From NCBI GenBank assembly GCA_019828565.1, contig JAHDYR010000003.1, positions 1 to 64,000 of the forward strand: DNA of 64,000 bases, read 5' to 3'. Both the position numbers and the translations under genes were made by a program. How positions within the stretch are numbered: position 1 is the first letter of the stretch; every line of letters begins with the position of its first letter. The DNA is from Carpediemonas membranifera BICM (taxonomy: Eukaryota > Protista > Fornicata). The notes below the pieces were generated by a model that was not told where the DNA came from, did not search any database, and was given only the letters and a program-made list of their open reading frames with translations. Below, one piece after another: positions 5,417 through 62,959 of the stretch.

Positions 5417-6739
5417 CTGTCGCACCTCTACCGCAATGTGTGCCCGACGTCCGACCTCGTCGGCGTTGGGCGTCGCTTTGAGGAGGAGACGCTCGTTCCA
5501 TTGCTCTCCAACCTCGTTGGTGCCGATGCAGTGATTGGTACGCTCGAAAGAGCGGGCCTTAGCATCACGCAGGGAGGTCTTGGATGGGGAATTCCGTCCA
5601 TCGTGTGGCCGGCGGCATATCTCGGTGCCGTGAAGCAGCTCTTTGACCAAAACATCTCACTGAACGTGCCCAATGAGGCATTTCAGGCGGTTGGTGCTGC
5701 TGGTGGTCCGCAGGACGTGGATGCCCTGAAGAAGTGGAAGACTTCGACTCCGCAGTTTGAACTGACGACGAAAGTGCGGGAGTTCAAGCAGAAGGAGCTT
5801 ACGGCGAAGAGATCGTTTATTTCTGAGCCTTATGTGCGTGCAGTGTCCACATTGACGCCGTTCGATCCCGTTCTTTCGGGTTCCGATTTGGCAACTGCAA
5901 TTCTCCGCCTACACCTGTCTCTTGACCCCTACGTGATAGACAAAGCCAAACCATGCCCCCTGTGCGGCAGATCTGTTGCGGATTGGTCTCATGGACTCTC
6001 TTGTGTTCGCCTCAAGGGCGGTGCCCGGATCGAGCGTCATAACGGCGTCAGAGACGCCATCTACGACGTTTGCTCGGAGCAGTTCGTCCCCAAACGGCGC
6101 GAGGTTCCGCTGGATCACACCAGTATGGCCTACATGCCCAACGGGACGGGCCCGACGGAGGTGAAGGCCGATCTGCTCATGCTAGCGGCAACGTCAGCTG
6201 ATGGAACGCCCCTCCACGGCGATATGATCGTCGATGTGGTCGTCTCACAGTCGATCAAGGATGGGATCCGTGACAAGGCCGCTCAGTTCTCGAGGTTCGA
6301 CTGCGAGCTCATCGCGGCCAGCTGTGACCTCGTTGGCAACACGAGAGCTGACCCCGAGGACCGCAAGTCGTGCTGGGTGTGGCGTCTGTGCGAGAGGCTC
6401 GGTCTGAGCGCGGAGGTCCGTCGGGACCTGCGCAGTCGGGTCGTCTTGGCTGTGTGGGCTGGGAACGCGGCGGTCATCCGTGACTACCGCGAGCAGTGCC
6501 GCGTGGCACAGCTCTAACTGTGGTGTGCCCTTCGCGTGTGAGAGAGGCGTCGTAGTCGAGCCAGTCGAGACATCCGAGATTTTTGCACATGTGCAAAATT
6601 TCGATTTCCCGAAAGCGACCCCGCCGAGGCTTACGACTCCGACTACATAACCCACGAGCTCTACTAGGGACCCCCACCCTGCTGACCCTCTGCGCGCGGT
6701 AAGAACGTTCTTTCTGATGATTAAAGGGCGTGTAGCTCA
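5417..6739 (+). mobile_element. CRE-like non-LTR retrotransposon, copy 1 (5'-truncated)
   Basis: Near-identical to 9437-10759; keeps the CCHC knuckle and restriction-like endonuclease; ORF stop at 6517. Confidence 0.9.
6726..6739 (+). other. tRNA-Ala 5' fragment (nt 1-14) at element junction
   Basis: GGGCGTGTAGCTCA identical to 14768-14781. Confidence 0.9.
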
Positions 6740-20761: not shown

Positions 20762-23700
20762 ATGGGAGAAACTGGAAGGCCTGGACGGAGACCTCACCCG
20801 GATATGTACATGTGGCCCGACTTTCGGACCCAAAAATTCCGACCCAGTTTATGGACTAGGAAAAGGGGAGAAATTTTGCACTCAACAATGCAGGTAGAAA
20901 TACCGACAAGGATCAGGGATTCCACGCAGAAGCAGTGGGAGGACATCAGGGAACTACTGGACAGCTTCCTCGCTGAAAGGAACGATTCAAGGACCCTACT
21001 TCTTCGTAGAACAGGCAAGTTTACAGGAAAGTCGCTCAATGCGAACTCCAAAGGACGCAAGGAAGTAATCATGAACGCCAGACGCATCCTCTTCGCAACC
21101 GGCGTCACTGACAACAAGGACATCATCCTCAGGAACCCATGCGGCATCCACGGCCTCCGCGACCTTTTCTACATGCTCACAGAGGCGCTCAACCCCAGAG
21201 ACGAGGAAGCAAAGGACATGGCACAGGCACTGGAGCCCAAGACGCTGAAAGCGGGCTTCACTGGCATGGCAAGATGGCCATCGGAGAAGGACATCGAGAC
21301 GGCGATCCTCAAGCCGAAGGAAGATGGGCCCATCGAATGGGATGTAGACAGGGACAGCGTCAAGAAGGCCGAAGGGTCGTTCATACTGGTATCAGGGGCT
21401 CATGGAGACGAGGCCGTAGAAGGCGTGCCTTACGACAAGGTATGGGATCCGGCAAACCAAGGCCCGGTCACCAGAGTGGCCTACGAGCAAGAGGACGGCA
21501 AGTACAGGGTCATCCTAGAGCTAAGCGACACGTCAGCATGGTCCATCAGCCGCTTCATGGAGGAGGCTAGGGACATCCTCAGGCTTCAGGCACCGGAGGC
21601 CCCGGCCATATGGCAGGCAGCATGGAACAAGTCAGGGATCTACCTGAAGGGCAGAACCAATATCCTGGGCGAAGGGGAGGAGACCCCCCTTAGCAACGAG
21701 CCGCTGTTCCGGAAGGTGAGGCTGGAAGTGCTCAAGGCCACCTCGGTCCGCAGCAATAGGGACGAACATGCCGATCTGGACAGGTCGTCCGCTAGCACGG
21801 TCATCGACGGAGACGAGGAGCAACATGTCAAGGACAAGGAGGAACGACGCCAGCAGGCCACCATGCCCGGCAGGAGAAGCCTCGACGACAGCCTCCTGGA
21901 AGTGAACAAGGACATGGTCGGGGCCAACCAAGGCAAGATCGACCAGGACGAGGAGGTCGACTCAAACAAGGACAGCAGTCAGCCGCCGAGGATGCCTGGA
22001 AAGGACAAGGAGAAACGGCTGGTGATCGGAGCCATCGACTTCGAGTGCGCAGACCCTGGCGTCAAGAAGGCAGGGATCCCTGCCATCCCGGTTGAGGGCG
22101 GGATCGTACTCTTTGACCTCAGCACTGGGGACATTCTTGGACATGGGCATGGCCTGTACTACCAGGACATACCGGCAGCAAGCATGGACCAAGCGAGGTA
22201 CACGGCATGGGCAGTGACGGGGCTGCCGCCGGCCACCTTCGTGGAGGTCGGGACGGGGCGGCCGCCGATCGAGTATGAGAAGCACATACATACTTTCAGG
22301 GACTGGGCCAACCGCCTGGCGGCTCAGCTGGCAAGGATCGAAAGGTCGGAGGGCTGGAAGATAATCATGTATGCAAAGGGGGTGGAGATGGAAAGCTTCC
22401 TCCTCACGAACCCCACAAATGGACTGGAGCAAGGAACCAGGGAATTCTTCCAAGCTAGGCTGGTGGACGAGAAGAAGCTACCAGAGATCCTGGAGAACAA
22501 CGGCAAGGAGGAGGCTGGCCAAAACCTCAGGGACAACCTCGACAAGGCCAACTACCTGGAAGCAGTAACAACATGGTCAAATGGATGGCAGAACAGGAGC
22601 GAGCCCAAGGGAGTCTGTCCGTACCACAGACACACCGCGGGTTGCTACCACTGTGGGTTGGCGGATACAGTAGTCTTCACAGCCAGGATCAGGGCCCTAT
22701 GCAAGGAGAGGATGAGCACCCCAGACGTCTACCACTACATGGGTAAGGCACTCGACAAGACCATGGAAGCAGTCGGGAATGCGGAGCCGGGCATGGATAT
22801 CATGGGAGGCCCGGAATTCGCGACAAGGAGGGACACCTTTGAGATCTTCGGCACGTACCCGATCGGGGACGCAAGGGACGTCAGCAGGGAAGTCGGCGAC
22901 AGGATCCTCGTAGTCCCGGACAACGGACACCGCTTCGGCATCGGCTTCGGGTTCGGGGAGGTTCTGTTGGGCATGAAGGGCATCTTACTGGCCCCCCTCA
23001 CAATCATGGACAACGAAGGAGTGCTGGAGAGAAGCCCGCTATGGACCATCATGGAAAGAGCCATGGCTAACCAGCTCCGCATGGTACGCGTCAGGAAGGG
23101 CCTAGGGGCAGCAAGGGAGGAGGACATCATAACCATGGCCATGCTATACGAGTGGTGGCCCTCGAAGGAGGCTACGGCTCATCAAGGAGTCTGGGGCTGC
23201 GACGACCTAGCAGAGAGCCTCAGGGACTATGAGAAGGTCATAGTCAACGTCAAGGCCCCCAGGAACAGGGGTAGGATCACCCTAGGGGCGAGCTTCATCC
23301 CGAGAGACTGGGGCATGGTCAGGGTCAGCGAGGCTGGGACCATCCTAAGCCGTATGCGCAAGGAAGGGGCCAGACTAGTCTCGGCAGCTATCCCGGACGA
23401 GCCCAGAGCCAACACAGTCAATGTCCCAGGCATCACGTATGTCCCCACCATCGACGGAAAGTCCGAACAGCCATACCAAAGTAGGTTCTTCGACAACGGC
23501 CTGGAGGAAAAGGCGAGGCGGATTAGCACCAGGATGGTGGGCAGGCACTTCGGCCAGGACGCGGATCAAGGACATCACGACCAGCATGGAGACAGGGAAG
23601 AGGACAGAAGGGTAGGACACGGAGCCGGCGGTAGAGCTGGTGTCAGAGCTGACGACAGAACCGGCGACAGAGCTGGTAACATGAACAGGACCTCGGATCG

Positions 23701-24265
23701 TAACCACGGAGGAGACGACAGGGAGAGACAGGACAACACGGGAACGCAGATGAGAGGCTCGTTCAGCGGGAACACCTGGGCCGGTAGAGGCTCAGAGGGA
23801 GGCATGGACAACAGCAAGGATCACTCTTCCTCCACGACGCTCAAGCGCAAGGAGGGCAGCACGAGTAGGATCATGGACTCGGACAGCGGAAAGAGAAGCA
23901 GGCACGAAGAGGACATGGACTGGGAGTCTGGAAGCAGACAGGCAACCGGCATGGACTCGGAGAAGCTGCGGCTCCGAAAGCAGTTGGCAGAGGCGCAACA
24001 AGAGATCTCAGCGCTCAAGGCTGCCCGACTCATGCAAGAGCAAGGCCACGGAAGGTTGGTGCTCTCCGGCGTCGCGACTAAGCCCAGCAAGGAGAAGCCC
24101 ACGATCCCCCGGCACAAGCACAAGAAGGCTAAGAAGGCCAAGCAGATCTCACCCATGGACCTGATGACCCAGTTCATCACGGTAATGCAGAGTCTACAAG
24201 GACAGCAAGTGAGTCAGGCCGAGGACAGCTGCAGCGGCAGTGGGGAGTCCACGGAGGAGGAGTAA
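20762..24265 (+). CDS. LINE ORF1 (1167 aa) with Maelstrom-like DEDDh / E-C-H-C nuclease domain and C-terminal coiled coil
   Basis: IDFE...PVE...CPYH-x8-C with HCGLAD; may extend upstream into ORF 20312-20713 by frameshift. Confidence 0.8.
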   Translation: MGETGRPGRRPHPDMYMWPDFRTQKFRPSLWTRKRGEILHSTMQVEIPTRIRDSTQKQWEDIRELLDSFLAERNDSRTLLLRRTGKFTGKSLNANSKGRKEVIMNARRILFATGVTDNKDIILRNPCGIHGLRDLFYMLTEALNPRDEEAKDMAQALEPKTLKAGFTGMARWPSEKDIETAILKPKEDGPIEWDVDRDSVKKAEGSFILVSGAHGDEAVEGVPYDKVWDPANQGPVTRVAYEQEDGKYRVILELSDTSAWSISRFMEEARDILRLQAPEAPAIWQAAWNKSGIYLKGRTNILGEGEETPLSNEPLFRKVRLEVLKATSVRSNRDEHADLDRSSASTVIDGDEEQHVKDKEERRQQATMPGRRSLDDSLLEVNKDMVGANQGKIDQDEEVDSNKDSSQPPRMPGKDKEKRLVIGAIDFECADPGVKKAGIPAIPVEGGIVLFDLSTGDILGHGHGLYYQDIPAASMDQARYTAWAVTGLPPATFVEVGTGRPPIEYEKHIHTFRDWANRLAAQLARIERSEGWKIIMYAKGVEMESFLLTNPTNGLEQGTREFFQARLVDEKKLPEILENNGKEEAGQNLRDNLDKANYLEAVTTWSNGWQNRSEPKGVCPYHRHTAGCYHCGLADTVVFTARIRALCKERMSTPDVYHYMGKALDKTMEAVGNAEPGMDIMGGPEFATRRDTFEIFGTYPIGDARDVSREVGDRILVVPDNGHRFGIGFGFGEVLLGMKGILLAPLTIMDNEGVLERSPLWTIMERAMANQLRMVRVRKGLGAAREEDIITMAMLYEWWPSKEATAHQGVWGCDDLAESLRDYEKVIVNVKAPRNRGRITLGASFIPRDWGMVRVSEAGTILSRMRKEGARLVSAAIPDEPRANTVNVPGITYVPTIDGKSEQPYQSRFFDNGLEEKARRISTRMVGRHFGQDADQGHHDQHGDREEDRRVGHGAGGRAGVRADDRTGDRAGNMNRTSDRNHGGDDRERQDNTGTQMRGSFSGNTWAGRGSEGGMDNSKDHSSSTTLKRKEGSTSRIMDSDSGKRSRHEEDMDWESGSRQATGMDSEKLRLRKQLAEAQQEISALKAARLMQEQGHGRLVLSGVATKPSKEKPTIPRHKHKKAKKAKQISPMDLMTQFITVMQSLQGQQVSQAEDSCSGSGESTEEE

Positions 24266-30468: not shown

Positions 30469-30740
30469 GGCTTGAATTTCTAGAAATGTAGTCCGTTAGG
30501 GACAAGAAAGCTTTACAGGGAAAAGAGACGACACCAAATGTGTCGACAGAAACCTGAAGACGATGTAAATAATACAACTATGTAAATATTGGGTAAGACC
30601 CACGACAAAGGTTGGCCTGACAAGGGTCACCGAGACCGGCATCTAGGCCCCTTGTCAGGACAAGGATAGCAGGAGAGGAGCGGGAAGCTGGGGCTCCCAA
30701 ATTCTGGGAATTCGCAGGATAAGGAAACAGGACAAAGGCA

Positions 30741-33700
30741 ATGGTAACCTACAAGATACTTAGTCTGAACACAGAGGGACACATAGGAAGAGGAAAGGAC
30801 TTCACGGCGTCTATGGCAACGGCGATTCAGCTAAGGTTGAAGGACATAGAGGCAGTACTCATACAAGAGACATGGAGAACGGCGAATACGAGGGTTCATT
30901 GCTTCATGGACCTTGACTACGCACTAGCAGGGAGGGAGACGGAAGAGGACCTGGTCTTAGCCAACGAAAAACGAAAGGCGGATGTCAAAAGTCAGCACCG
31001 CATCAACCGACAACTAGGCATAGCAGGCAATGACGAACCTGCGCCAAGATGGAAGGGAACAAGGGAAGGCATCGGCACGATAGTGAGCCCACACGCAACT
31101 GCAAAGTGGGACATCGGCATATCGGACAGCCTATCGGGAAGAGTGCAAGCCAGCATAATGAGAACCGGCAGGGACATACTAGTCATCAACGTGTATGGCC
31201 CTCCATCCGGCCACAGCAAGCAGGAGAAGGATGGATTCAGGGACACTATACAGAAGATCATGGACATGAAAGGGAGCATGGAGGCCATAATTATGGGAGA
31301 CTGGAACATCGACCCAGGCCAGATGGAAAGATCCACCCGGTGGAAGGATATGATGGAGAAGCACAGGCTCAAAGCCATCATACCCAAGTCTGGGACGCTC
31401 ACATCAGGAACATCAACCCCGGACTTTGCAGTGACAACACCAGGAATCCAGGGGGCGGAGATTGAGGTGGTAGAGTCTCAGAAGGTCGGGGTATGGGGCT
31501 CAGCACACAATGGAATCACACTAGCATGGAAGGAACAACGGTACTATGGCAGAAGTGAGCGAGACGTGGCTCTGGCCATACCCGAGGTGCACACCTGGCC
31601 CATGAAAAAGAAGGAGGGGCCAGTCACAGTCTCAAAGCTGAACAGGATCAAGAGCTCGGACCAATGGGAAGAGACTATAAGAGCATGCATGGGCGACCCA
31701 GTGAACAACAGGGGAGCAAAGGCAAGGGACAAAGTGTTCGGGAACGGAGTGTGGAGCGAACTCCAGCGAACCCCATGGACAGAAATAGGCAACAGGACCA
31801 GGAAGGAAAGGATGAAAGAGGAGCTGGAGAAATACTGGGGAGAGCGCAGGGCCAAATGGGTGGCCGACCTCAGCAGAAGTGCAAAGGGGGTATAGGGCCT
31901 CAAGGGCCTCAGTGGAAGCTGCCATCAGAAGGTGGTGGTGTGTTAACCAATACAAGGGAATGCCGGAGAGCCTCCTCAAGGACGGAGTGATAACCACGGA
32001 CAAGGCGGCCATCAGCGAGATCCTCTTGCAACAGTATGCTAGAGTCAGCAGAGGCAGGGAACCCACCTGGAAGACATGGAGGGGCAGGGACGGAAATGAG
32101 TTCAAGGAAAGCGAGGTCAAAGCCGCAATCAAAAGGATCAGGAGGGACACCGCACCAGGGCCTGACCTCACATCTGGAGACATGCTGAGAGAGCTGGATG
32201 AGAAAGGCCTTAGGGAAGTGACGAGGCTCATCAACAGGGTCTACAGGGAGGGCGACGTACCCAAAGCATGGAAGTATGCCACAGTGTCGGCCATACACAA
32301 GACAGGGAAGCCAAGGGTCAAGCCGGAATCATATAGACCAATATCCTTGACACCACTGCTATACAGGGTCTATGGTAGATTGCTCAAGATACGTCTGGAA
32401 GCAGCAACGAAAAGGTTCATACCAAGAGAACAGGCTGGTTTCCAGTCAGACAGGGACGTCATCCAGCAGATACAGTACATTGTGCAGCGGCACCAGGAGG
32501 GGTGAGACCACGTCAATCTTTCTGGACATCGAGAAGGCATATGACACGGTACCAAGGGACATTCTCATGGATAAGCTACAGGGTATGGGGGTGGAGGAGC
32601 ACTTGATCAGGGCAATTCAAGGCACAATAAAGGAAACCTGGATATCAGTCAAGGGGGCAAAGGCATGGGAAAGAACCAACAGGGGAGTTAAGCAAGGGTG
32701 CGTCCTGGCACCGACATTGTTTGTGCTGTTCATGGCTAACTGGCCCCACCTGGCCAGAAAGAAAATCAAGGGAGAACGGTACGACATCAGAGAACCGCCA
32801 AGGACCACGAGCCACCTCAGCGACCGACTACCGGCAGCACTTACCATGTTTGTGGATGACACTGCGGTCACAGGGAGCAAACCGGAGCATAGCCAGATGG
32901 TCGCCAACATAATGGTAGACATAATCAAAGAGCATGAAATGAGGGTGAACGCCCAGAAGAATGTAATGATTAGCGTGGACAGAACAGCCCTAGTCAGGAT
33001 CGAGGGGGTAACACTACTGCCAGAGAAGGAGGCGAGATACCTGGGATTATGGATCGCAAGTGGGAAGGACCCTATGTCGGCCTGCATAAGGCGGAAACAG
33101 GAGCAGAGCGAAAGGTACAAGAGACTGGTGAGATGGGCAGGGTGGACCAGGGCAAACATGCCAGCACTAGCAAGCAGGCTACTACTGGAAATATATATAT
33201 GGCCCAGGATCCTCTTCGGAGTCGAGGTGTGGGGGAACGCACCGGGAGGTAGAAGGATCTGGAATGACTGGCAGGGAATCATGGCAGGAACAGGACCGGG
33301 AGGGGGCGCAGCCATGAGGCTGATGAATGGATGGGTGGACCTCCAGGCACACATGGAATGGCTGGCAGTCAAAAGGATAGTCAACTACAGGGACCAGGAT
33401 ATACCAGTCAGAAACAGAGAATGGGGGCGAGGCACGGTTATGTGGGAAGCTAGGGAGAGAGTGCAGCATCTACTGGAGGGCACCAGAGAGGGAGCCCCTA
33501 AACCAGCGCTACTGGATTATGGCATGGAAACGATCAGGAGGGGGTGGATGAAGCGGTGCAAAAGCCGTACGGCACTAGGACTAATGGAAATCATGGGGAC
33601 AAGGAAATTAAGCAAGTGTCTGCAAGGTAAGCCTACGGTAGACCGAAAGGCTGGGAAGGGGCAAAGCAGGGCGGAATGGAAGAGAATTGTATCCATTGCA

Positions 33701-52300: not shown

Positions 52301-55300
52301 TGTCACAGCATCTCCCTCACTCCCAGTGCACTTTAAGGTAAATGGATTTCCCCGTTTTCTGCTGCCATCCGGCACAGTGATCACTCCTGGAAAATGGTAA
52401 CGCAGAATCATCTGTTCCTATCTGATCTAGATCCTGTTACGATCAGAACCTTCACTCGGCACTTCCGAGTCCTCAAAGCCCAATTTCCAACTCTTTCGCC
52501 ATCCGACTGTATTTCAGAAGAGATTCTTGATGTCCTTGAGCTTCGATATGAAGTTGATCTCTCTTCCGCAACCATTGAAGATATCGAGGCTTCTCTCCTC
52601 ACGCACCTCCTACCTCCAACACTCAATGGATGCCTCCGAGCAATGCGTGCCCTCCAGATGCCTAATCACGACAACAAGCTTCACTCGATCCTCTTGTACG
52701 TCCGAGAGCTCCGTGCGCTCTACAAGCACGCTCTAACGTTCATCCCCGACCACGACCCGCCCAAGCCTGAAGCTGATGATGACGACCCCGACGTAGACGC
52801 TCTCGCTGAGCTACTGGGCTCCTCGCCATCCGGGCCTAGCCCCGCTCATCGGGGCCTGAGCAAGGTCGCCGCCCGTGTACTCCTCGCCGCCATCAGGCCA
52901 AGTGAGCTTCAAGCTCGCCTCAAGACCGAGGTTGAGCTACAAGGCGCTCGCCTGTTCGAGGATACCGTTCAGATCGTGAAGACCGAGGTCGAGCGCCTCC
53001 AGGCGCTGGCAAGCGATCTGGCAGGCCTCGACATCTCGTCTTTGACACCGTCCACCACGTCAGCTGCCGTGTTGACCTCCGTTGACCGCCCTCGCCAAGG
53101 TGGCGGGCAGAGCCGCCAAGGCCGCCCCGCCATAGGCCGAACACATGGGCTCCCGGCCACACCCTCCAAGACCCCCTGCCCATTCTGTGGTGGTTGGCAT
53201 TGGAGGTGGCAGTGCCCTAAGGCCGACGCCGCCCAGCGAGGCTCCACCCAGCAGTCCAACCAGTCGCCGCACCCGGCACAACCGACCGGCCAGCATGACA
53301 AGCAACAGCCACATACCCAAGCCCGACATACTTCGGGCAACGCCAACCGCCAGCTGCCAGTGCCTCAACCAAATGCGGATCCCACTCAGCAGTCCGACCG
53401 CCGCGCTGGTAGGATGAACCTCCGCCCCAGCAGCACCCTCAAGAAGGGAAGACCAGTGCATGAGACCGCCCATGCCCAGCCGGTGCAGTCTGTCGACGAA
53501 CCACAGCCCGACTCATCCTACTTCACCGTCCAAGGGAAAGTCAATGGCGAGACGCAGACAATCCTGATTGATTCCGGTTCCGCCCCAAGCTGTATTTCGC
53601 AGTTGTTGGCCGAGCGCCTCAAGGCCACGATCGACACATCCGTCTCAATTGCTCTGTTGGACGTCAATAAGCAGCTTTTTTATGACGAAGGGCGTAGCAA
53701 AGGTGAGTCTGAGCCTTCCATCTGCGGGCAACGCCATGGTCACTACCGAGGCCACCTTCCACGTAATAGAACGCGACGATGATCACATACTCGTTGGTTG
53801 TGATATCCTCAGAGCTCTTGGCTTCCTCAGCGCCAAGGGCCTCTTCGTCCCTACAGGCGTCGACTGCAACGAAGACCCCCAGACCACCGAAGGGCTCCCT
53901 CCCCACAAGTACCTAGACCCAGTCCCTGTCGCTGAAGCCTCAGCTGCTCCACAGTTCTTCAGCGATGAAGTGGACGTATGTCCTGATCAACTACACGACC
54001 CTATCCGTGAGATCCTCCGCAAGCATGACGCCGTGTTCGATCCAAACCTCCCCGAAGAGCCGGCAGCCTTCCCCCCCATGACCATCCCGACCGACGGCTA
54101 CATTGTCAACATGAAGCCACGCCCTCTGGCTCCAGCCAAGACGGAGTGGCTGCACGATCATGTCTCAGACTTACGCGACAAGGGCATCACCGAGGCCAAC
54201 ACCGGCCCATATGCCAGTCCAGTAGTCCTCGTGCGAAAGGGGGACGCTTGGCGGCTTTGCATCGACTATGTCCTACTCAACAGCCACACCACCCGTGATC
54301 GACACCCCCTCCCCAACATGCGCGAGTTCCTTCGCCGAGCAAGTGGGTGCGACCGATTTGCCGCCCTGGGCCTGACCTCAGGCTATTGGCAGGTGCCTAT
54401 GGCTGACGAGGACAAGGAGAAGACCGCGTTCATCGCCCCTGGCGTGCATGAACAGTTCACCAGGATGCCTTTTTGGGCTTGCCAATGCCCCGTCGCATTT
54501 CCAGCGAGGTATCGAGACTATCCTCGGGCCCATCCTCCATAAGGGGGTTGACCCGTACATCGATGACCTCTTCATGTACTCCTCCGAGGAACTTTTCCTC
54601 AAGCTTCTCGATGACACCCTCACTCGCCTGGAAGAAGCCAACGTCCGCCTAGGCGCAAAGAAGTGCCGAATAGGCTATTCCGAGGCCCCCATAGTTGGTT
54701 TCATTGTCGACAAGGCTGGAGTTCACGTAGACCCTGAGCGCACCCGCGCCCTACGAGAGCTTCCCCTCCCCACTGATGTCCACGGGCTCAGGACCGTGCT
54801 CGGCAAGTTCCAGTTCTTAGCCTCATTCATCTCAGAGAAACGCCATGAGCTGTTCAAGCCCCTTACCGCTCTCCTAGAGAAGGACGCCGTCTTCAGCTTC
54901 GGCCCAGCCGAGACTGAGGCTTTCAACACCCTTAAGTCCCTCTTCACCGATGACCTCTTCATCGCTCACCCAGACTTGTCCCTTCCTTGGACCCTCGAGA
55001 CCGACGCTTCCAATGTCGGAGCCGGAGGTGTACTCTACCAGACTCCCAACGACAACTCGGGCAGACAAGTGCTGGCCTATTTCTCTCATACGTTCACCCC
55101 CACCCAGACCAGATGGGCTACCTGCGAACAGGAACTTTTCGCCATCGTATACGCCTTCACGCACCCCTCCCTCACCCACCTTCTGCGCGTGAAGCATGTA
55201 ACCCTCAGAACAGACCACCGTAATCTGATCTACATGATCTACAAGTCCGCGACGAACGACAAGATCCTCCGCTGGCGTCTGACGCTAGCCGACTTCAACT

Positions 55301-56880
55301 TTGAAATCACACACGTTCCCGGGAAGGATAACGTCATAGCTGATTCGCTCAGCCGGTATGGCCACGGCCAGACTACAGCCCAACCCGTCGCCGCCATATC
55401 TGTCGATGCCCGGTTCAAGGACAGACTGGCACACTTCCAAGGAGAGGACCCGGAGATCAGCAAGCTGCCGGTAGACGCTGATGGTCTCCGACGCCGGAAC
55501 GGAGCCTGCATGATCCCGACCTGTGATCAAACGAAGGGCTTACGCCAAGAGCTTATTGCCATCGCTCACCGTGGCCACCACGGAGCTAGAGCCACGTACA
55601 CCCGCCTCCGCGATGACGGCTACACCTGGGTCAGCGCGACTCAAGAGATCGCCGCCTACGTCCACTCCTGTCCGATCTGTCTCAAGGCTAGACTCTCTGA
55701 GTTCGCTCAGTCAAGCCTAGGGACCACGGCCGTGTATAAGCCTTTCCACACGGTCGCCATTGACACCATAGGCCCCATCCCCGCAGACATGTTCGGCCGC
55801 AAGTACATCTTCGTCCTTGTTGATATGTTCACCAGGTACACGGAGTTATATGCCAGCGATGAGAACACTGCCGATGCCGCTGCCTCTGCCATCTGGCAAC
55901 AACTTGTCTGCCGTCATGGCATCCCTGCCGCCATTAAGGCTGACAACGGGCCGGAGTACACTGGTGCCGTGATCAAGGCCCTCCTGTCTGATGCCGAGAT
56001 CACCGAACAACACACTCTCCCGTATCATCCCCAGTCCAACGGCGTTGTTGAACGCCGTAACGCCGAAGTGATGAAGCACCTCCGCTGCCTCACGCTCAAC
56101 TTTAACAAGTTTGACGAGTGGAGCAGGCTTCTCCCTGCCGTTCAGCTTTTGCTGAACACTTCTATCTGCTCTGCCACAGGCCTCACCCCCCACAGCATGC
56201 TTTACGGCGAGCATTTGGACCCGTCCGCCACTAGAGCCCGGCTACTCGCCCCGACTGACCCTACAGCTTCCGAGACAATCCTATCCTCCCATCGTGAATA
56301 CCTAGACAACCTCACTAACCACCTGAAGTCCCTTTCCAAGAAGGGGGAGGAGACGCAACGTAAGGTTGTCGAGAAGCGCCTGCCAAAGGAAAGACCGCAG
56401 AGACCGAGCTCAAGCCAGGTGACCTAGTCCTCGTACAGCGCAACAGGACCCCCAAGTTGCACGGTCACCTGGGACCCTACAAGATCCTCGAGATCCTCGA
56501 CCACAAGGCCGTCGTTATCGCCGACATCATCACGAACACCACCACAACCGTCCACCGGGATCACCTGCTCCCGTTCCACGTGAACTACCACTTCAACAAG
56601 CTCCGCCAGCTAGCTTCCTCAGACGAGGAGACTTTTATCGTTGAGAAGATCCTCAAGCACCGCGTCAAGGACGACATCCTCGAACTGAAGGTGAAGTGGG
56701 AAGGCTACGACGAACCCACCTATGAGCCGGCGACTGCACTCTCCGGAGTCTCGCTCGCTCGTGCTTACCTTAGAGCCAATAAGCTTCGGCTTAGGGGGGC
56801 AAGATGTCACAGCATCTCCCTCACTCCCAGTGCACTTTAAGGTAAATGGATTTCCCCGTTTTCTGCTGCCATCCGGCACA
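52301..56880 (+). mobile_element. Gypsy element E
   Basis: Identical 76-bp LTRs 52301-52376 and 56805-56880; TSD TCGC; purine tract AGGGGGGCAAGA. Confidence 0.95.
52394..56840 (+). CDS. gag-pol of E (frameshifted) with chromodomain running into the 3' LTR
   Basis: CPFCGGWHWRWQC, LIDSGS, YIDD, TDAS, ADNG, FIVEKILKHR..VKWEGY. Confidence 0.9.
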
Positions 56881-57001: not shown

Positions 57002-58040
57002 TGTCACGGGGCTATATATATTTATGGTCTACGTACCTTATTGTAAATCATACACTCGCAACTGTTTTCCCTTCAACTGGGTCAAAGTAATTACTTCCCG
57101 GTTCAAGATGGTAACGTTCGATTTAGAGATCAAAATGCCGCGGTTTTCCGCGGCGAACATCACGATAGAAGGAGTGGAGAAGTTTGAGAGAGAAGTGCGT
57201 GTAGCGATCGCCTCCAAGCATGATTAACCGGTTGCTCTATTGCTGCCGAGCGGGCTAGCGAAGGAACTCGAGAGCGCCAAGCCCGGATTGACCGCTGAAA
57301 CCGCCACGAAAGACGAAGTCTTCAACTTTCTCCGAGAGCTCGCTGCCCCCAAGTCGCTTCAGCAGCTTAAGAAGCATCTCCGCTCCATCGACTGTCCCAC
57401 AAAGGACACCAGTGGCTATCGCACTCATCTTGCCGCCGTGCGCGATTATACGGATCGATTCAAGAGAGCCGCCGACTACGCTCAGCGCGTGGCCTCGAAG
57501 GAGCGCAAGGACGGACACCGCCGCCTGTACGGCACCAAGAAGACTAAGGTTCCAGTCCTCTCGGAGGACGGCGCCTCAGCAACGGTCGTCGAAAAGGACG
57601 TCCCCTGGACCGCAGACGAAGTCGCGGCCAAGCGGGCCGAGGCCTTCGAAAAGACCGCATCCAGACGCTAGCCTACGCGGATGCGGAGGGATCCTATGGC
57701 AGATGGACGACCCATCCAGGGTCATCAGCTACTACAGCAAGACGTTCACTCCGACGCAAACTCGCTGGTCAACCTTTGACCAGGAGATGTTCGGCCTCAT
57801 CTACTGTCTGTCACGCGAGGATTTAGCGCCTTACCTCAAGGCGCACGACAACTTGACAGTTCGAACAGACCACCGGAACCTGATTTACCTTCACCTCAAG
57901 GCCCCGGACACGCGCAAACACACACGTTGGCTCGCGGTCCTGCAAGAGTTCCAATACCGAGTCGTACACATCCCGGGAAAAGACAACAAGGTCGCAGACT
58001 TCCTGTCGCGATACATACCCGAGCCAGACGGCAAACACAT
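57002..58040 (+). mobile_element. Gypsy element G: 5' LTR, partial gag and RNase H (internally deleted, then interrupted)
   Basis: TGTCAC start, ATG at 57108, gag-like frame joined to DAS..GGIL..TDHRN..ADFLSR; no second LTR in the window. Confidence 0.7.
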
Positions 58041-58112
58041 AGATGAGGTATCGGGCTCTAAAAATTTCTGCACCCAGACGAAGGTTCTGATCCTGCGTTA
58101 AAAGGTCAAGAA

Positions 58113-61100
58113 ATGATACAAGCTTCAATTCTCACGCAAAAGCAGATCATAGAGCTGTGCGAAGCTCTCCGATCAGCGCCATTTCCACAGAGAAAATCAT
58201 ACTTATACTTCAAGAACGTTACCGGCCCCTCCAAAGCAGTTGCAAAGCATCTAATCAACAACCTTTATGTGATAGGAGAACCCATAATCGTCGAGCCCTT
58301 CCAAACCTTCCAGTCCGATTCTCCCAAAGTGCGCAAAACCATCTCCGTCGCGAAAGGCTTGCCCCGCAGGCATCTCATAGCAACTTGTCAGCGCATTGCA
58401 ACTAGTTTTCAACTGTCCATAACTGATGGTCCTCTCCGCGCCTTCCCGTGCACCTTCATCTGCTCGTATCCGCGGTTGCAACATGTATGGCAGTACAAGC
58501 AGGCTTCCGCAAGACCACTGGTATTCCCACTGTCACAACGACCAACTGGACCCGCTTCGTCAACTGGATCGATGGAGCCAAGCCAAACAATCACCCACAG
58601 CAGCCCCCGAGGGTCCCCGCCACGTTCACGGACCCATGGACATGGGACGCGGCCGTCAGTCAAGCCCCAGGACAGCGTGCACCCATTGGCCCTACCATCG
58701 CTCAGAACAGCCGCCCCGGCCCGCTCATATCCAGCTCAGGTCTGCATCTCACTCAGCTATTGGATCTTAGCGTAATTCACATACTATATGGCATCTCCCC
58801 AGCGCTATCATCGCCCGATCTCACCGCCAAATACATGGCTTGGGGTGGTGCCCCCGATACACCTGTGCGCAAGGCCACCAGAAAGGCTGAACCTGTCAAC
58901 GATAGCCTCCTCCTAGCCTGTAAGAGGGAACGTAAGGACCAAGAGAAGCCCACGGAGAACGAGCATAGCTCAAGCGAGTCTTCAGATGTAGAGTTGTGCA
59001 GCCCCATTCAGTTCTCTCCGTCACATCAGCTAACCGATATTCAAGGGCGTATCACAATCGCCATCAACCACCTCAAAGAGCACGACGAAAATGATTCACC
59101 CATGGCGCCAGCATGTGGGCCCCCGTCCCCCTTTGGACCCTTCCTCGAGATCCCGACCCATGCAGACGGGAATTGTGGTCTTCACGCAATGGCTGCTGCA
59201 ATGAAGTTGCAGCTCACGATCACTCGGCCCCAGGCTCTCAGGGCCATCCGAGACGCCCTATCCGCGGAAACGCTCCAGCCATCACCGAGGGTCCGAGGTG
59301 CTGTGGCTAACCTGCGAGTCCCCACATCGTCATTCCGCAACTCCTTCCTCTCTTTCGATACACTTGCCATTATTTCCAAGGCTCTAGGAGTGCAAACCCT
59401 TATCATCTCCGAGATCACCCCTCTTTCGGTCACATGCTACATTTTGGAAGCATCCACGATCGCATCGGTTTCTCTTCCGCTCCCAGCTGCTCTCAGCCTC
59501 GCTCAATGTGGCCTGATATTGCTCCATCATAGCGTAGACCACTTCAAAGCCCTCATTCTTCCTCATGCGAGCAAGCAAGATTTCCACGGGGGCATCTTCC
59601 CTTCCCTCCATCAGTGCGCCGTGGCCAAGGAGGTCCACGAGGGTGTTGGCATTCCCTCGCACAAGCGCACTGGCTCGACGAACAACCAGGGGAGCATGCC
59701 CCTGTCCCACATCATCGTCATAGACTTTGAGGCGATGGGATATGCAGTGGACGACAGTCACCCTGGTGCCCGGGTATGCTACCCAGTGGAAGCAGGCGTA
59801 ACCCTGCTATATAGTACCACAGAACCGGGCACAGACATCCCCATGTGGGAAGTCGGAGGCATCCACTGGGGACCTCTCGCAACGGATTTCCCTGCGGCTC
59901 TCATGCGCTCAGCTCTCGTACAGTCATGCAAAATACACGGGTGCCCTCCAATGACCTTCAAGATTCATCCTGAATCGCGAGGTATAGACATCGTCTTCCC
60001 GTCGCCCAGACAGTGGCTCCACCAACTGGCTGAGATCATGAAACAACTCCCAGGGTGCATCCTGATCGCCAAGGACCCTAGGATGGAAAACACCATCATT
60101 CAATCTCAGGCTGATGCGGCAGATCGGGAGACACTGGGACTGGTCAGAGACATAGCCGACCTGGAGTCGATCGACCGTCAGCTCTTCGCCGGCATTTTCT
60201 CATACGTCAGCACTGACCTCTTTGCCAAGAGAATGGACACAGCCCAAGCGCTAACGTGGGTTAAAGCCCCATGTCCCTTCCATGCCCACTCGGACCCAGG
60301 CTACCACTGCGCGCTAGCAGACACCATAGCGTTTGCGGCTGTTATCAAAACTTTCTCATGTCTAAGCAGAAGGCGCCATGCTATTGCAAGCTCGGACCAA
60401 GACATCACGGACTGGTGGGCAAATGAGCTGGACGGGCTCATTCTTAATTGGACAACAGAACTGATGGACCTCGCCCCAGAATTCCTAACCTCTCTACAGG
60501 TGCCCCCACTCACTTCACTACATGACACCTTCGCCCGCTTCTATATAGTCCCGCGCAACGGATACTCTTACCCCTCTGGCAAGAACACATACGAGGTGAT
60601 GACTCGACCTAAGTTCCGGTCACAACGACGCATCAAGGTGACTGGAAGTGGTTCGATCCACATGCAGCACTCATAGACACAGCAACCCGGAGGGGTTCTC
60701 ACCCCCCTGCCACCCTCGAGGAGACATTCACCGCGCCCATCAGCGTACAAGGTGGCGACACCTCCTTTGGAAACCTCTTAACGGCTGAAGAGGCATACTG
60801 GACATCTCCGCCGTCCACTCAACTCCCACGATCAGTAGAGGAGCTTAGAACGATGAACGCTCCCCCCGCAAACAACACAGGCAACAACATAGTCAAGTCC
60901 TACAAGGCCCCTCGCTTCTGGTTCCTAGTTCCAAGAGACGGCAATGTCCCCCGCCTTCGCAAAGTAAGATCCCGCATGTCGGTGCAGTAGTAGGTGCTGT
61001 CAAGTCCAGACATCAGCATCCCCACCATCAGTGCCATCCTCAACAAGTTTAGCTGGAGAATTGCAAGCCAGTCGCACCTGGCATGCTGCCCTGCTCTCCA

Positions 61101-61973
61101 GCTCGACCTGGACCTCCTTTTCTCGAACCCGTATCAGTTTGCACAGGCATACGACGAGAAACTTATCGCTTGGATCACCTCTTGCATTGACGCCTAGGTT
61201 CGTAACACTTTCGGTTACACAGATGTGCCGCCTCCCCTCAGGCCCTGTCTCCTCCCTTGTTGATCAGTAGACCGGGTTCGCTGTGAGCCTTCTGGCCGGC
61301 GACGTCAACCCTAAGACCACCCCTTGTTCTAACACAGCTGTCTCACCCGGAAGCCCCTCATATGCACCTGAAACCCGAAGAGAACAGCATTTATCCATCA
61401 TCCCCGATCGTAGCTGAGGAGCCTAACGCCCGTTGGGGCCCTCTCATGAGCATCCCAGTTCACGCCGACGGCAACTGTGGCCTTCACTCACTTGCTGTCT
61501 CTCTGGGTATGACGGGCCTGACGAGACGAGAAGCCTTGTCGAAACTTGCCTCCGCCATCCAGAATGGTACAGTGGATCTTAACTCCTCGTGGAGATCCAC
61601 GGTGCGCACTTTAACCATACACACCACCGCTAGCGACATTGGTAGTGCCTTCCTATCCACCACAGACCTCCGCAATATTGCATCGCTCTTCGGAAAAAAT
61701 GTGCTTATTGCTCATCGATATGATGCCAACACAGTCTCAGTAACCATCCCAGCATTATCCGAGTTCTCTACACTTCCTCTCAATATTGACGCGCTCAAAA
61801 CGATGCTCAAAACCGATTACATCCTCATTAGACTGAGTGCACTGCACTTCACGCCTCTTTTTCCGTCTGTGAGGAGCGCAGAAGCAAGGCGCCTGCAATA
61901 TGCTGAATATCGTCCAAGAAGAGCCCCCTCTAGTGTGGCTCGCAACAACATCGCCGCTGAAGGCCTCACACTT
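58113..61973 (+). CDS. Frameshifted polyprotein: OTU protease + Maelstrom-like nuclease + second OTU; probably from a mobile element
   Basis: ADGNCGLH...HF twice (about 59150-59560 and 61450-61865); IDFE..PVE..CPFH-x8-C / HCALAD (59720-60330); cut by LTR H. Confidence 0.7.
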
Positions 61974-62959
61974 TGTGGTTCAATGGGTGTTGAACTTTTA
62001 CTGAGGAGAAGACTCGACACAAGGGTGTCGAGGAGAAACTCCTTGACTATTAAATATAACGTAAATCTGTGTAACTTTGGGTAGGACCCACAACACTGCC
62101 CCTCCATGCCTGGTATAGGCATGACAGAGAGACTTGACGTCAGCATTTCACCAAAGGCCTGGACGGTGCCACCCGACCGCCAACGGTGACTCATAGGGCT
62201 GGCAACCCCATGGCCTGAGTGCTTTCGCATCTAGCTGAACGAAATCAAAATGATGGTATCATGATCTAACTGCGGTACCGCTATGTGAGCTCTGTTTCAA
62301 AAATGGTGAAACGTGACGGAGAGGCTTACCACTGCCCCTCCACGGCCTTCCTAGGCCGTCTTCACAAACCTTATACGTGTTATATGCCATTCCATGTAAT
62401 TCGAAGGCCAAGAACGATTGCTCTAGCAAACACTGCCAATGCTGAGCCCTTATCGCTCATAATCACACAGACGCCGAAAAACGTACTTAGAAGCTCCAAT
62501 TCGGCTCCGTTGAGGAGTTCTGAGGCTTCTAATTTTCTGCGTCCAACTGTACTTGAATAACAACATCAAACTGACCGGAAGGAGCACTAGGAAGCTCCTA
62601 ATGCCTTATTACCGACAATAAATGCATGCTTGAAGACTAAGATGACCTTGTTAGTTGTTCCTTCGACCGTTTCCGAGAAAAGTGCAGGATATGTCGCCGT
62701 CAACTCATTTGATGTCGGACAACACAGCCGTAGAGGCCGTTCTGAAGGAAATTCGTGCCAAAATCACCGAACTTGGTGATGACGATCTGGCTAGGCCACT
62801 TATTGTTGCCCATACGTCCGTTTGTCGTTCCCTTCGCGCTCAGAAGTATCGTGGACGCAAGCGCATGGTCACCGACAATCTGTAAGTAACAAACATCAAC
62901 CGTGAGGTTATATAGTCACCGCGTGCAAGCCTCAGAACGCATCACTCGCACCCCTGACG

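Follow-up and report, generated by a model that had tools for sequence, protein, structure and literature searches.

Pieces of two LINE retrotransposons side by side in Carpediemonas membranifera: a Maelstrom-type nuclease and an OTU-like protease as parts of a LINE lineage

Introduction

Maelstrom is best known as an animal host factor that silences transposons, and the accessory domains known from long interspersed nuclear elements (LINEs) are few: RRM or CCHC domains in open reading frame 1 (ORF1), esterase, RNase H, PHD and, as a recent addition from algae, deubiquitinases. The exonuclease of the arenavirus nucleoprotein (NP) degrades double-stranded RNA and so blunts innate immunity, and its zinc site has the same Glu...C-x2-H...H-C residue pattern as the domain described here. 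This domain lies at the end of a 64,000-nucleotide stretch of the fornicate protist Carpediemonas membranifera BICM (assembly GCA_019828565.1, contig JAHDYR010000003.1, positions 1 to 64,000 of the forward strand; the window), in a region (58113-61973) where a model reading the sequence alone had predicted a second, independent Maelstrom-like nuclease between two OTU protease domains. We find that the region is made up of pieces of two non-LTR (LINE) retrotransposons lying side by side, not of one gene, and that nuclease and protease both belong to the standing make-up of one LINE lineage.

The closest described systems come from several directions. An amoeba Maelstrom (MAEL) protein with DEDD and ECHC motifs is an active Mg/Mn-dependent exoribonuclease (PMC4408791), while the DEDD residues have been lost in animal Maelstrom (PMC4408791; PMC2628886) and the metazoan protein binds single-stranded RNA (PMC4408791). 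OTU domains are present in Ginger1 and Helitron transposons (PMC2836005), and in algae the LINE ORF2 protein can be fused to an N-terminal OTU or Josephin deubiquitinase (PMC13405545). DEDDy exonucleases are known from the long terminal repeat (LTR) retrotransposons and the Athena elements of bdelloid rotifers (PMC5408684). In the literature that we searched, we came across no LINE described as carrying a Maelstrom-type domain.

Results

The first of the two elements, a copy of what we call family B, occupies 58058-61370 (+). On comparison with its relatives we read it as one dead, frameshifted copy with a full 5' end and a large internal deletion, extending from the start of the apurinic/apyrimidinic endonuclease (APE) domain to near the end of ORF2. 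It retains the OTU-like domain (59066-59560, +; Cys box HADGNCGLH at 59165, His box VDHF at 59534), the MAEL-type domain and the last ~390 bp of the element, and both the APE and the reverse transcriptase (RT) have been deleted from it. The second element is a fragment of family A at 61376-61967 (+), equivalent to 1921-2512 of the family A reference sequence L023 and 99% identical to at least 15 family A copies in the C. membranifera genome (24.2 Mb in 69 contigs, designated C with a number below; counts given with 'at least' are lower bounds). Within it lie the first linker repeat and, on the + strand, a second OTU-like domain with its Cys at 61476 and its His box at 61845. Thus, the two DGNC...HF regions that the original prediction had seen flanking the nuclease both exist and are mutually homologous (31% identity, E 4e-14), but they belong to two different elements, with the 3' end of the first intervening. 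Because the second OTU-like domain is part of another element, the placement of the nuclease between two proteases is a juxtaposition.

A near-identical twin of 58058-60980 was found at C39:16738-19739(-), with 99.0% identity over 2917 aligned bases. Window copy and twin share their first base, whereas the sequences upstream of it are unrelated, and 58058 is therefore the true 5' end of family B. The likeness ends at the deletion junction of the window copy (60980/60981), and beyond that point the twin continues into a frame with an APE domain (PF03372) that is 40% identical to the APE of family A and 58% to that of a relative on contig C26. The C26 relative, 60-66% identical to family B, has the OTU-like, MAEL, APE and RT domains in this order. 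In the window copy the broken polyprotein frame runs from an ATG at 58113 to 60676 (+) and includes an ORF of 742 amino acids at 58448-60676, and the N-terminal frame at 58206-58352 shares homology with the first part of the long ORF of family A. Compared with the twin, single bases are missing from the window copy at 58453 and 60617, which changes the frame and leads to a stop at 60674, whereas the twin is 4 bases short in the Cys box and 2 bases short at 60862. Since the breaks are private to each copy, their ancestor would have had a single frame from the ATG through the OTU-like and MAEL domains into the APE. The segment between nuclease and APE (60643-60975, +), put into a different frame by the loss of the base at 60617, is homologous to residues 713-825 of the family A ORF (tblastn, 47% over 114 amino acids). 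The twin also has 83 additional bases in the linker between the OTU-like and MAEL domains, opposite 59572-59598 of the window and partly a duplication of neighbouring sequence, so that the linker is length-variable in family B too.

The stretch 60981-61370 (+) is probably the 3' end of family B and contains the last codons of ORF2, a stop at 61195-61197 and a 3' untranslated region with no poly(A). It shows weak similarity to the C-terminal end of the RT ORF in family A (tblastx, 31% over 62 amino acids, E 3e-6). A 5'-truncated copy at C24:70534-70765 is 99% identical and ends at the base matching 61370, and older copies have 84% and 75% identity. That 60981-61375 could be unique sequence was considered and rejected when a dedicated search found these copies. 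In all, family B is a low-copy family with two long copies at 99% identity, both of them broken, and short 3' fragments. The elements have the traits of LINEs, being multi-copy and without terminal repeats, and having a common 3' end with 5'-truncated copies; APE and RT occur in one element in the C26 relative and in family A. The host element, the type of which had been called unproven because an LTR cuts it, can now be assigned to the APE- and RT-encoding LINEs through the C39 twin, the C26 relative and family A. The interrupting LTR is real, and the element that it interrupts is the family A copy.

Family A is ~6,990 bp long, with an OTU-like domain, 51-bp tandem repeats, MAEL, APE and RT in this order, and its APE and RT are in the same frame system as the part encoding OTU and MAEL. 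Families A and B are alike in architecture, with 50% identity in the MAEL domain, 32% in the OTU-like domain and 40% in the APE; B is an older, low-copy sister lineage and A a young one. The intact relatives probably encode one long protein consisting of an N-terminal region, the OTU-like protease, a linker, the MAEL exonuclease with a C-terminal extension, the APE and the RT. By this intact domain order, nuclease and protease are residents of the LINE lineage and not a cargo framed by two proteases, and as the older lineage B has the OTU and MAEL fusion, the fusion predates the young family A.

The two LINE copies are nested in an older Ty3/gypsy pol, and the LTR element H was inserted later. 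The RNase H part of the old pol lies at 57412-58057 (+) and was recognised by tblastn with the intact pol of 54448-56424, residues 186-304 of which match 57664-58014 and residues 398-571 match C4:69361-69885. The old pol is interrupted at 58057 and its integrase part restarts at C4:69380, outside the window (rve domain at L034:5427-5990); part of the pol is missing at the insertion site. Element H, also of the Ty3/gypsy type, is marked in the region 61970-62095 (+) by a 4-bp target duplication, ACTT (61970-61973), and a 122-bp 5' LTR at 61974-62095, directly after the end of the predicted region. Its 3' LTR at C4:67799-67920 is again followed by ACTT, so that the duplication flanks both sides according to self-comparison and reading of the junctions, and its LTR has more than 25 genomic copies at 100% identity. 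Element H sits at the internal deletion junction of the family A copy and splits it; this copy, 5'-truncated and internally deleted, resumes at C4:67921-69379.

Some further features of family A were observed. At 61960-61973 of the window and on L034, the internal deletion of the copy in the nest joins family A position 2512 to position 6425 through a 2-base filler, and the 8 bases ACTTACGG of position 6425 (C4:67921-67928) are repeated right after the 3' end of the copy (C4:69380-69387). The recurrence of ACTTACGG points to microhomology or a template switch at the time of insertion. Between OTU and MAEL, the linker is a 51-bp tandem repeat encoding 17 amino acids with Gly-Gly (L023:2468-2647; also C16:13162-13668 and others), and the number of repeats varies greatly even between copies that share 99.8% identity elsewhere. 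At C39:457913-466999 (L025), two family A copies stand head to tail, ~150 bp apart.

The nuclease of family B is a MAEL-type DEDDh domain at 59690-60628 (+), made up of a core at ~59690-60350 and a C-terminal extension of ~90 amino acids that is common to the other LINE lineages. The predicted motifs are all found within ORF 58448-60676, namely IDFE (59720), PVE (59783), G.PP.TF as HGCPPMTF (~59933), AK...ME as AKDPRME (60068), CPFH-x8-C (60272) and HCALAD (60305). The individual residues start at 59723 and 59729 (D-x-E), 59789 (zinc-site Glu), 60068 (AK..ME), 60272 and 60281 (C-x2-H) and 60305-60322 (H-C-x3-D). The assignment as a MAEL-type DEDDh nuclease is strong, and the Maelstrom likeness proposed from the motifs was borne out by profile comparison, fold matches and reverse search. 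In hhalign against PF13017-positive protist proteins, the LINE profile gave a probability of 99.5% (E 3e-22) with IDFE, P.E, HG.P, AK..ME, C-x2-H and YHCALAD aligned. An AlphaFold model of the domain had a confident core (pTM 0.68; Foldseek match probability 1.0), and its fold matches at Z 8-9 included Maelstrom (9nhc, 5af0 and 4ybg, Z 8.4-8.9), RNase T (8.9), 3'hExo (8.3), LCMV NP (8.1) and the DinG exonuclease. Of the ECHC zinc-site residues, the Glu comes from PVE, the first Cys and the His from the C-x2-H of CPFH and the last Cys from HCALAD; all four fall on invariant E, C, H and C positions of the protist set, and D-x-E and H-x4-D are invariant among LINE lineages only 23% identical. Catalysis is probably retained, since the LINE domains keep both the DEDD and the ECHC motif sets at this level of identity.

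Searches in both directions placed the domain in the same way. A profile built from seven LINE copies of at least four lineages was run against 1.84 billion representative proteins and found 21. These were C. membranifera gene models, LINE ORF1 proteins beside ORF2 with APE and RT in assembly GCA_002919055.1, and, with E values from 5e-8 to 2e-4, amoebozoan and metagenomic PF13017 proteins. Proteins matching these elements are on deposit as C. membranifera hypothetical proteins. The ORFs themselves had no match in Pfam or among the PDB sequences, and a word-index protein search with the nuclease domain alone gave no match outside the C. membranifera genome. When the genome was searched with a protist-only Maelstrom profile, the family B domain was the best match (E 2e-9); ~70 further places were found, and those cross-checked by coordinates were copies of families A and D. 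No single-copy cellular Maelstrom stood out in this search.

A third lineage, without OTU, carries the MAEL-type domain within the window at 22025-22966 (+), in the ORF1 of a D-type LINE (20762-24265), and APE and RT matching this ORF1 are at 30723-33271. The two parts are ~6.4 kb apart, presumably split by another insertion. The RTs of family A and the D-type are 27% identical. As had been predicted, the family B nuclease is similar to the D-type domain (tblastn, 23% identity over 345 columns, E 2e-11), the likeness runs beyond the core with DTF..F and VP.NG aligned, and the base composition of the two regions differs, with a GC skew of -0.19 at 58-62 kb (C-rich) and an AT skew of +0.27 to +0.32 at 20-24 kb (purine-rich). 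The nuclease is thus carried by more than one mobile element of the nest, as proposed. In a maximum likelihood tree, the 14 LINE-borne MAEL domains formed one clade (support 100/99) apart from the five cellular Maelstrom proteins sampled, with families A and B together (98/98) beside the D-type group, which also holds the GCA_002919055.1 copies. The family B nuclease is therefore not independent of the other, contrary to what had been claimed. The tree is rooted at the midpoint and thinly sampled; even so, a single old acquisition fits it better than independent captures.

The OTU-like domain was recognised from its motifs, from structure ranking and from language-model neighbours. The Cys box HADGNCGLH followed by HF is in the correct order in families A and B and degenerate in the decayed C26 copy. 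Among 48,161 PDB chains ranked against a weak model (pLDDT 47), the best 22 were all OTU folds (Z 6.8-4.0), and 29 of the 30 neighbouring ESM-Atlas clusters carry PF02338 (score 0.93). The ranking and the neighbours thus agree with the OTU likeness seen earlier in the DGNC...HF motifs. The assignment is of moderate strength, and the region is likely, on this modelling, to be an OTU-fold cysteine protease.

Discussion

The MAEL-type domain of these LINEs resembles the protist Maelstroms most closely. Proteins such as Entamoeba EHI_192630 have the like motif series (IDFE, P.E, HG.P, AKG..ME, C-x2-H, YHCAL.D) and the same fold class (PMC4408791; PMC2628886). The protist proteins are cellular, 300-500 amino acids long and, in those found, carry an RRM, whereas the LINE domain is inside a polyprotein or ORF1, has the ~90-residue extension, scores too low for the Pfam threshold and stands in a clade of its own. 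The arenavirus NP exonuclease is likewise of DEDDh fold with a zinc site (model matches to LCMV NP as above and to Lassa NP at Z 7.7), but no significant sequence similarity between the two was found. The DEDDy (RNase D-like) ORFs of rotifers are another case of a DnaQ-like 3'-5' exonuclease carried by retroelements, and one shared between element types; they differ in being DEDDy and not DEDDh/MAEL, in forming a separate ORF3 and in residing in LTR and Penelope-like elements and not in LINEs (PMC5408684). The OTUs of algal LINEs, Ginger1 and Helitrons are cysteine proteases of the deubiquitinase type that precede APE-RT or are joined to a transposase (PMC13405545; PMC2836005). Likened to these by description, the domain studied here lies beyond the Pfam OTU family, is paired with MAEL and has no 2A-like peptide.

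From the anatomy and the domain homologies we infer the activities and roles of the two enzymes. It is most likely that the element would encode an active exoribonuclease of the LINE particle together with a protease cutting the polyprotein and/or removing ubiquitin. Like the amoeba protein, the MAEL domain would have a structural zinc site and degrade RNA from the 3' end in an Mg/Mn-dependent way; it would be carried in the LINE ribonucleoprotein and act on LINE RNA, where it may trim the 3' end, remove the template RNA or destroy double-stranded RNA. Template removal is a candidate role because the Pfam search of the family A frames did not detect RNase H. The OTU-like domain may cut after Gly-Gly-type sites, by which it would free the N-terminal module from the polyprotein or strip ubiquitin from the particle. 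Gly-Gly occurs in the 17-residue repeat of the family A linker and in the family B linker; it would suit an OTU-type cleavage site and could easily be there by chance. 2A-like peptides and CCHC knuckles were sought in these elements and none were found.

Taken as a whole, the reading of two adjoining LINEs with a resident protease and nuclease and the enzyme mechanism proposed for them is in our view quite likely correct, and several observations weigh against parts of it. Target-site duplications were looked for at both the family B and the family A copies and none were found. The assignment of 60981-61370 to family B draws on its contiguity with the rest, on a weak match at the protein level and on a like degree of divergence, and this stretch could alternatively be a separate truncated LINE abutting it. 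The reading frames vary among family A copies that are 99.8% identical, so that the element may have one ORF or two. PF13017 gave no match to the ORF at E<=1, nor anywhere in the genome, and the acidic residue of Exo II can be named only as a candidate, the invariant Glu of AK..ME. For the OTU-like domain, the model is weak; PF02338 had no match at the LINEs in a genome-wide search; no significant sequence match to any OTU was obtained in Pfam, PDB-sequence or word-index searches; and hhalign of the OTU profile against the two bona fide OTUs of the genome gave a non-significant probability of 2.5%. The best PDB sequence match of the OTU-like region was a viral replicase at E 1.6, and word-index searches with the OTU profile and with the OTU region within the long family A protein retrieved nothing outside the genome.

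These negative searches would be expected if the DGNC...HF region were a degenerate or different papain-like or structural domain, only superficially like a working OTU protease. We consider this improbable, because the Cys and His boxes are kept in the right order in two families, the leading structural matches are exclusively OTUs and nearly all feature neighbours are OTU clusters, and because fusions of OTU or Josephin domains to LINE ORF2 proteins have been reported in algae (PMC13405545). It is about equally doubtful that the MAEL-type domain acts as an RNA-binding or packaging module in place of an ORF1 protein and is not used as a nuclease. The D-type domain does sit in ORF1, the usual place of an RNA-binding protein, no RRM, CCHC knuckle or other RNA-binding domain was found in these elements, and metazoan MAEL is an inactive RNA binder (PMC4408791). 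Against this, every LINE lineage has retained D-x-E and H-x4-D, the residues gone from metazoan Maelstrom, at identities down to 23%, and this retention points to selection on catalysis, although the two roles are compatible.

The anatomy itself leaves far less room for other explanations. The original prediction of one element with a captured Maelstrom-like nuclease between two OTUs, an independently acquired mobile module against host defence, has in its favour that the nuclease and the two OTU-like regions share a strand over a span of 3.9 kb and that these two regions are homologous. It is very improbable, as the second OTU-like domain matches family A copies at 99% identity but the first domain at just 31%, the 3' terminus of the first element (61370) falls between the nuclease and the second OTU, the C39 twin has an APE and not an OTU after the nuclease, and the LINE nuclease domains form one clade. 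Least credible of all is a single-copy host gene, for which the long open frame alone would speak. There are at least 60 genomic matches, with near-identical copies in different flanks, APE and RT follow in the relatives, and the region is nested inside a retrotransposon pol; the two nuclease domains of the window, moreover, align significantly.

On the sequences at hand, a MAEL-type exonuclease with its catalytic and zinc motifs intact is kept in at least three Carpediemonas LINE lineages and in one other assembly. To these lineages the locus adds the third, older one (B), and it does away with the idea that the nuclease is enclosed by a pair of proteases. A protist-type MAEL domain, predicted to be active, as a standing part of a retrotransposon raises the questions of whether it processes LINE RNA, replaces RNase H or counters RNA silencing. 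An anti-silencing role may be considered because the genome has two genes with Piwi/Argonaute domains (C7:87108-88037(-) and C65:23790-24737(-)), and C. membranifera probably has a small-RNA pathway. The OTU-like and MAEL domains would then be a LINE-encoded counter-silencing module, in which the nuclease destroys the double-stranded or antisense RNA feeding Argonaute and the protease deubiquitinates the LINE particle. This more specific role is a speculative and rather unlikely one. If it were true, the module would have counterparts in the arenavirus NP exonuclease and the nairovirus OTU, and Maelstrom, which in animals acts against transposons, would have a relative on the transposons' side of the conflict.

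Two observations were made outside these families. One C. membranifera gene model, KAG9395705.1 (P0007, annotated 'Splicing factor U2AF'), starts with the C-terminal half of the MAEL domain of the LINEs, its residues 1-169 corresponding to profile positions 145-293, and is probably a chimeric or mis-called model. The LINEs of assembly GCA_002919055.1 (L036 and L037; PPCM01001449.1 and PPCM01002550.1) have a MAEL-bearing ORF1 of 1129-1250 amino acids and no OTU, and in L036 this ORF1 is followed by an ORF2 with APE and RT. The organism of this assembly is probably a relative of Carpediemonas; its LINEs adjoin a chromodomain element ~65% identical to Carpediemonas chromoviruses.

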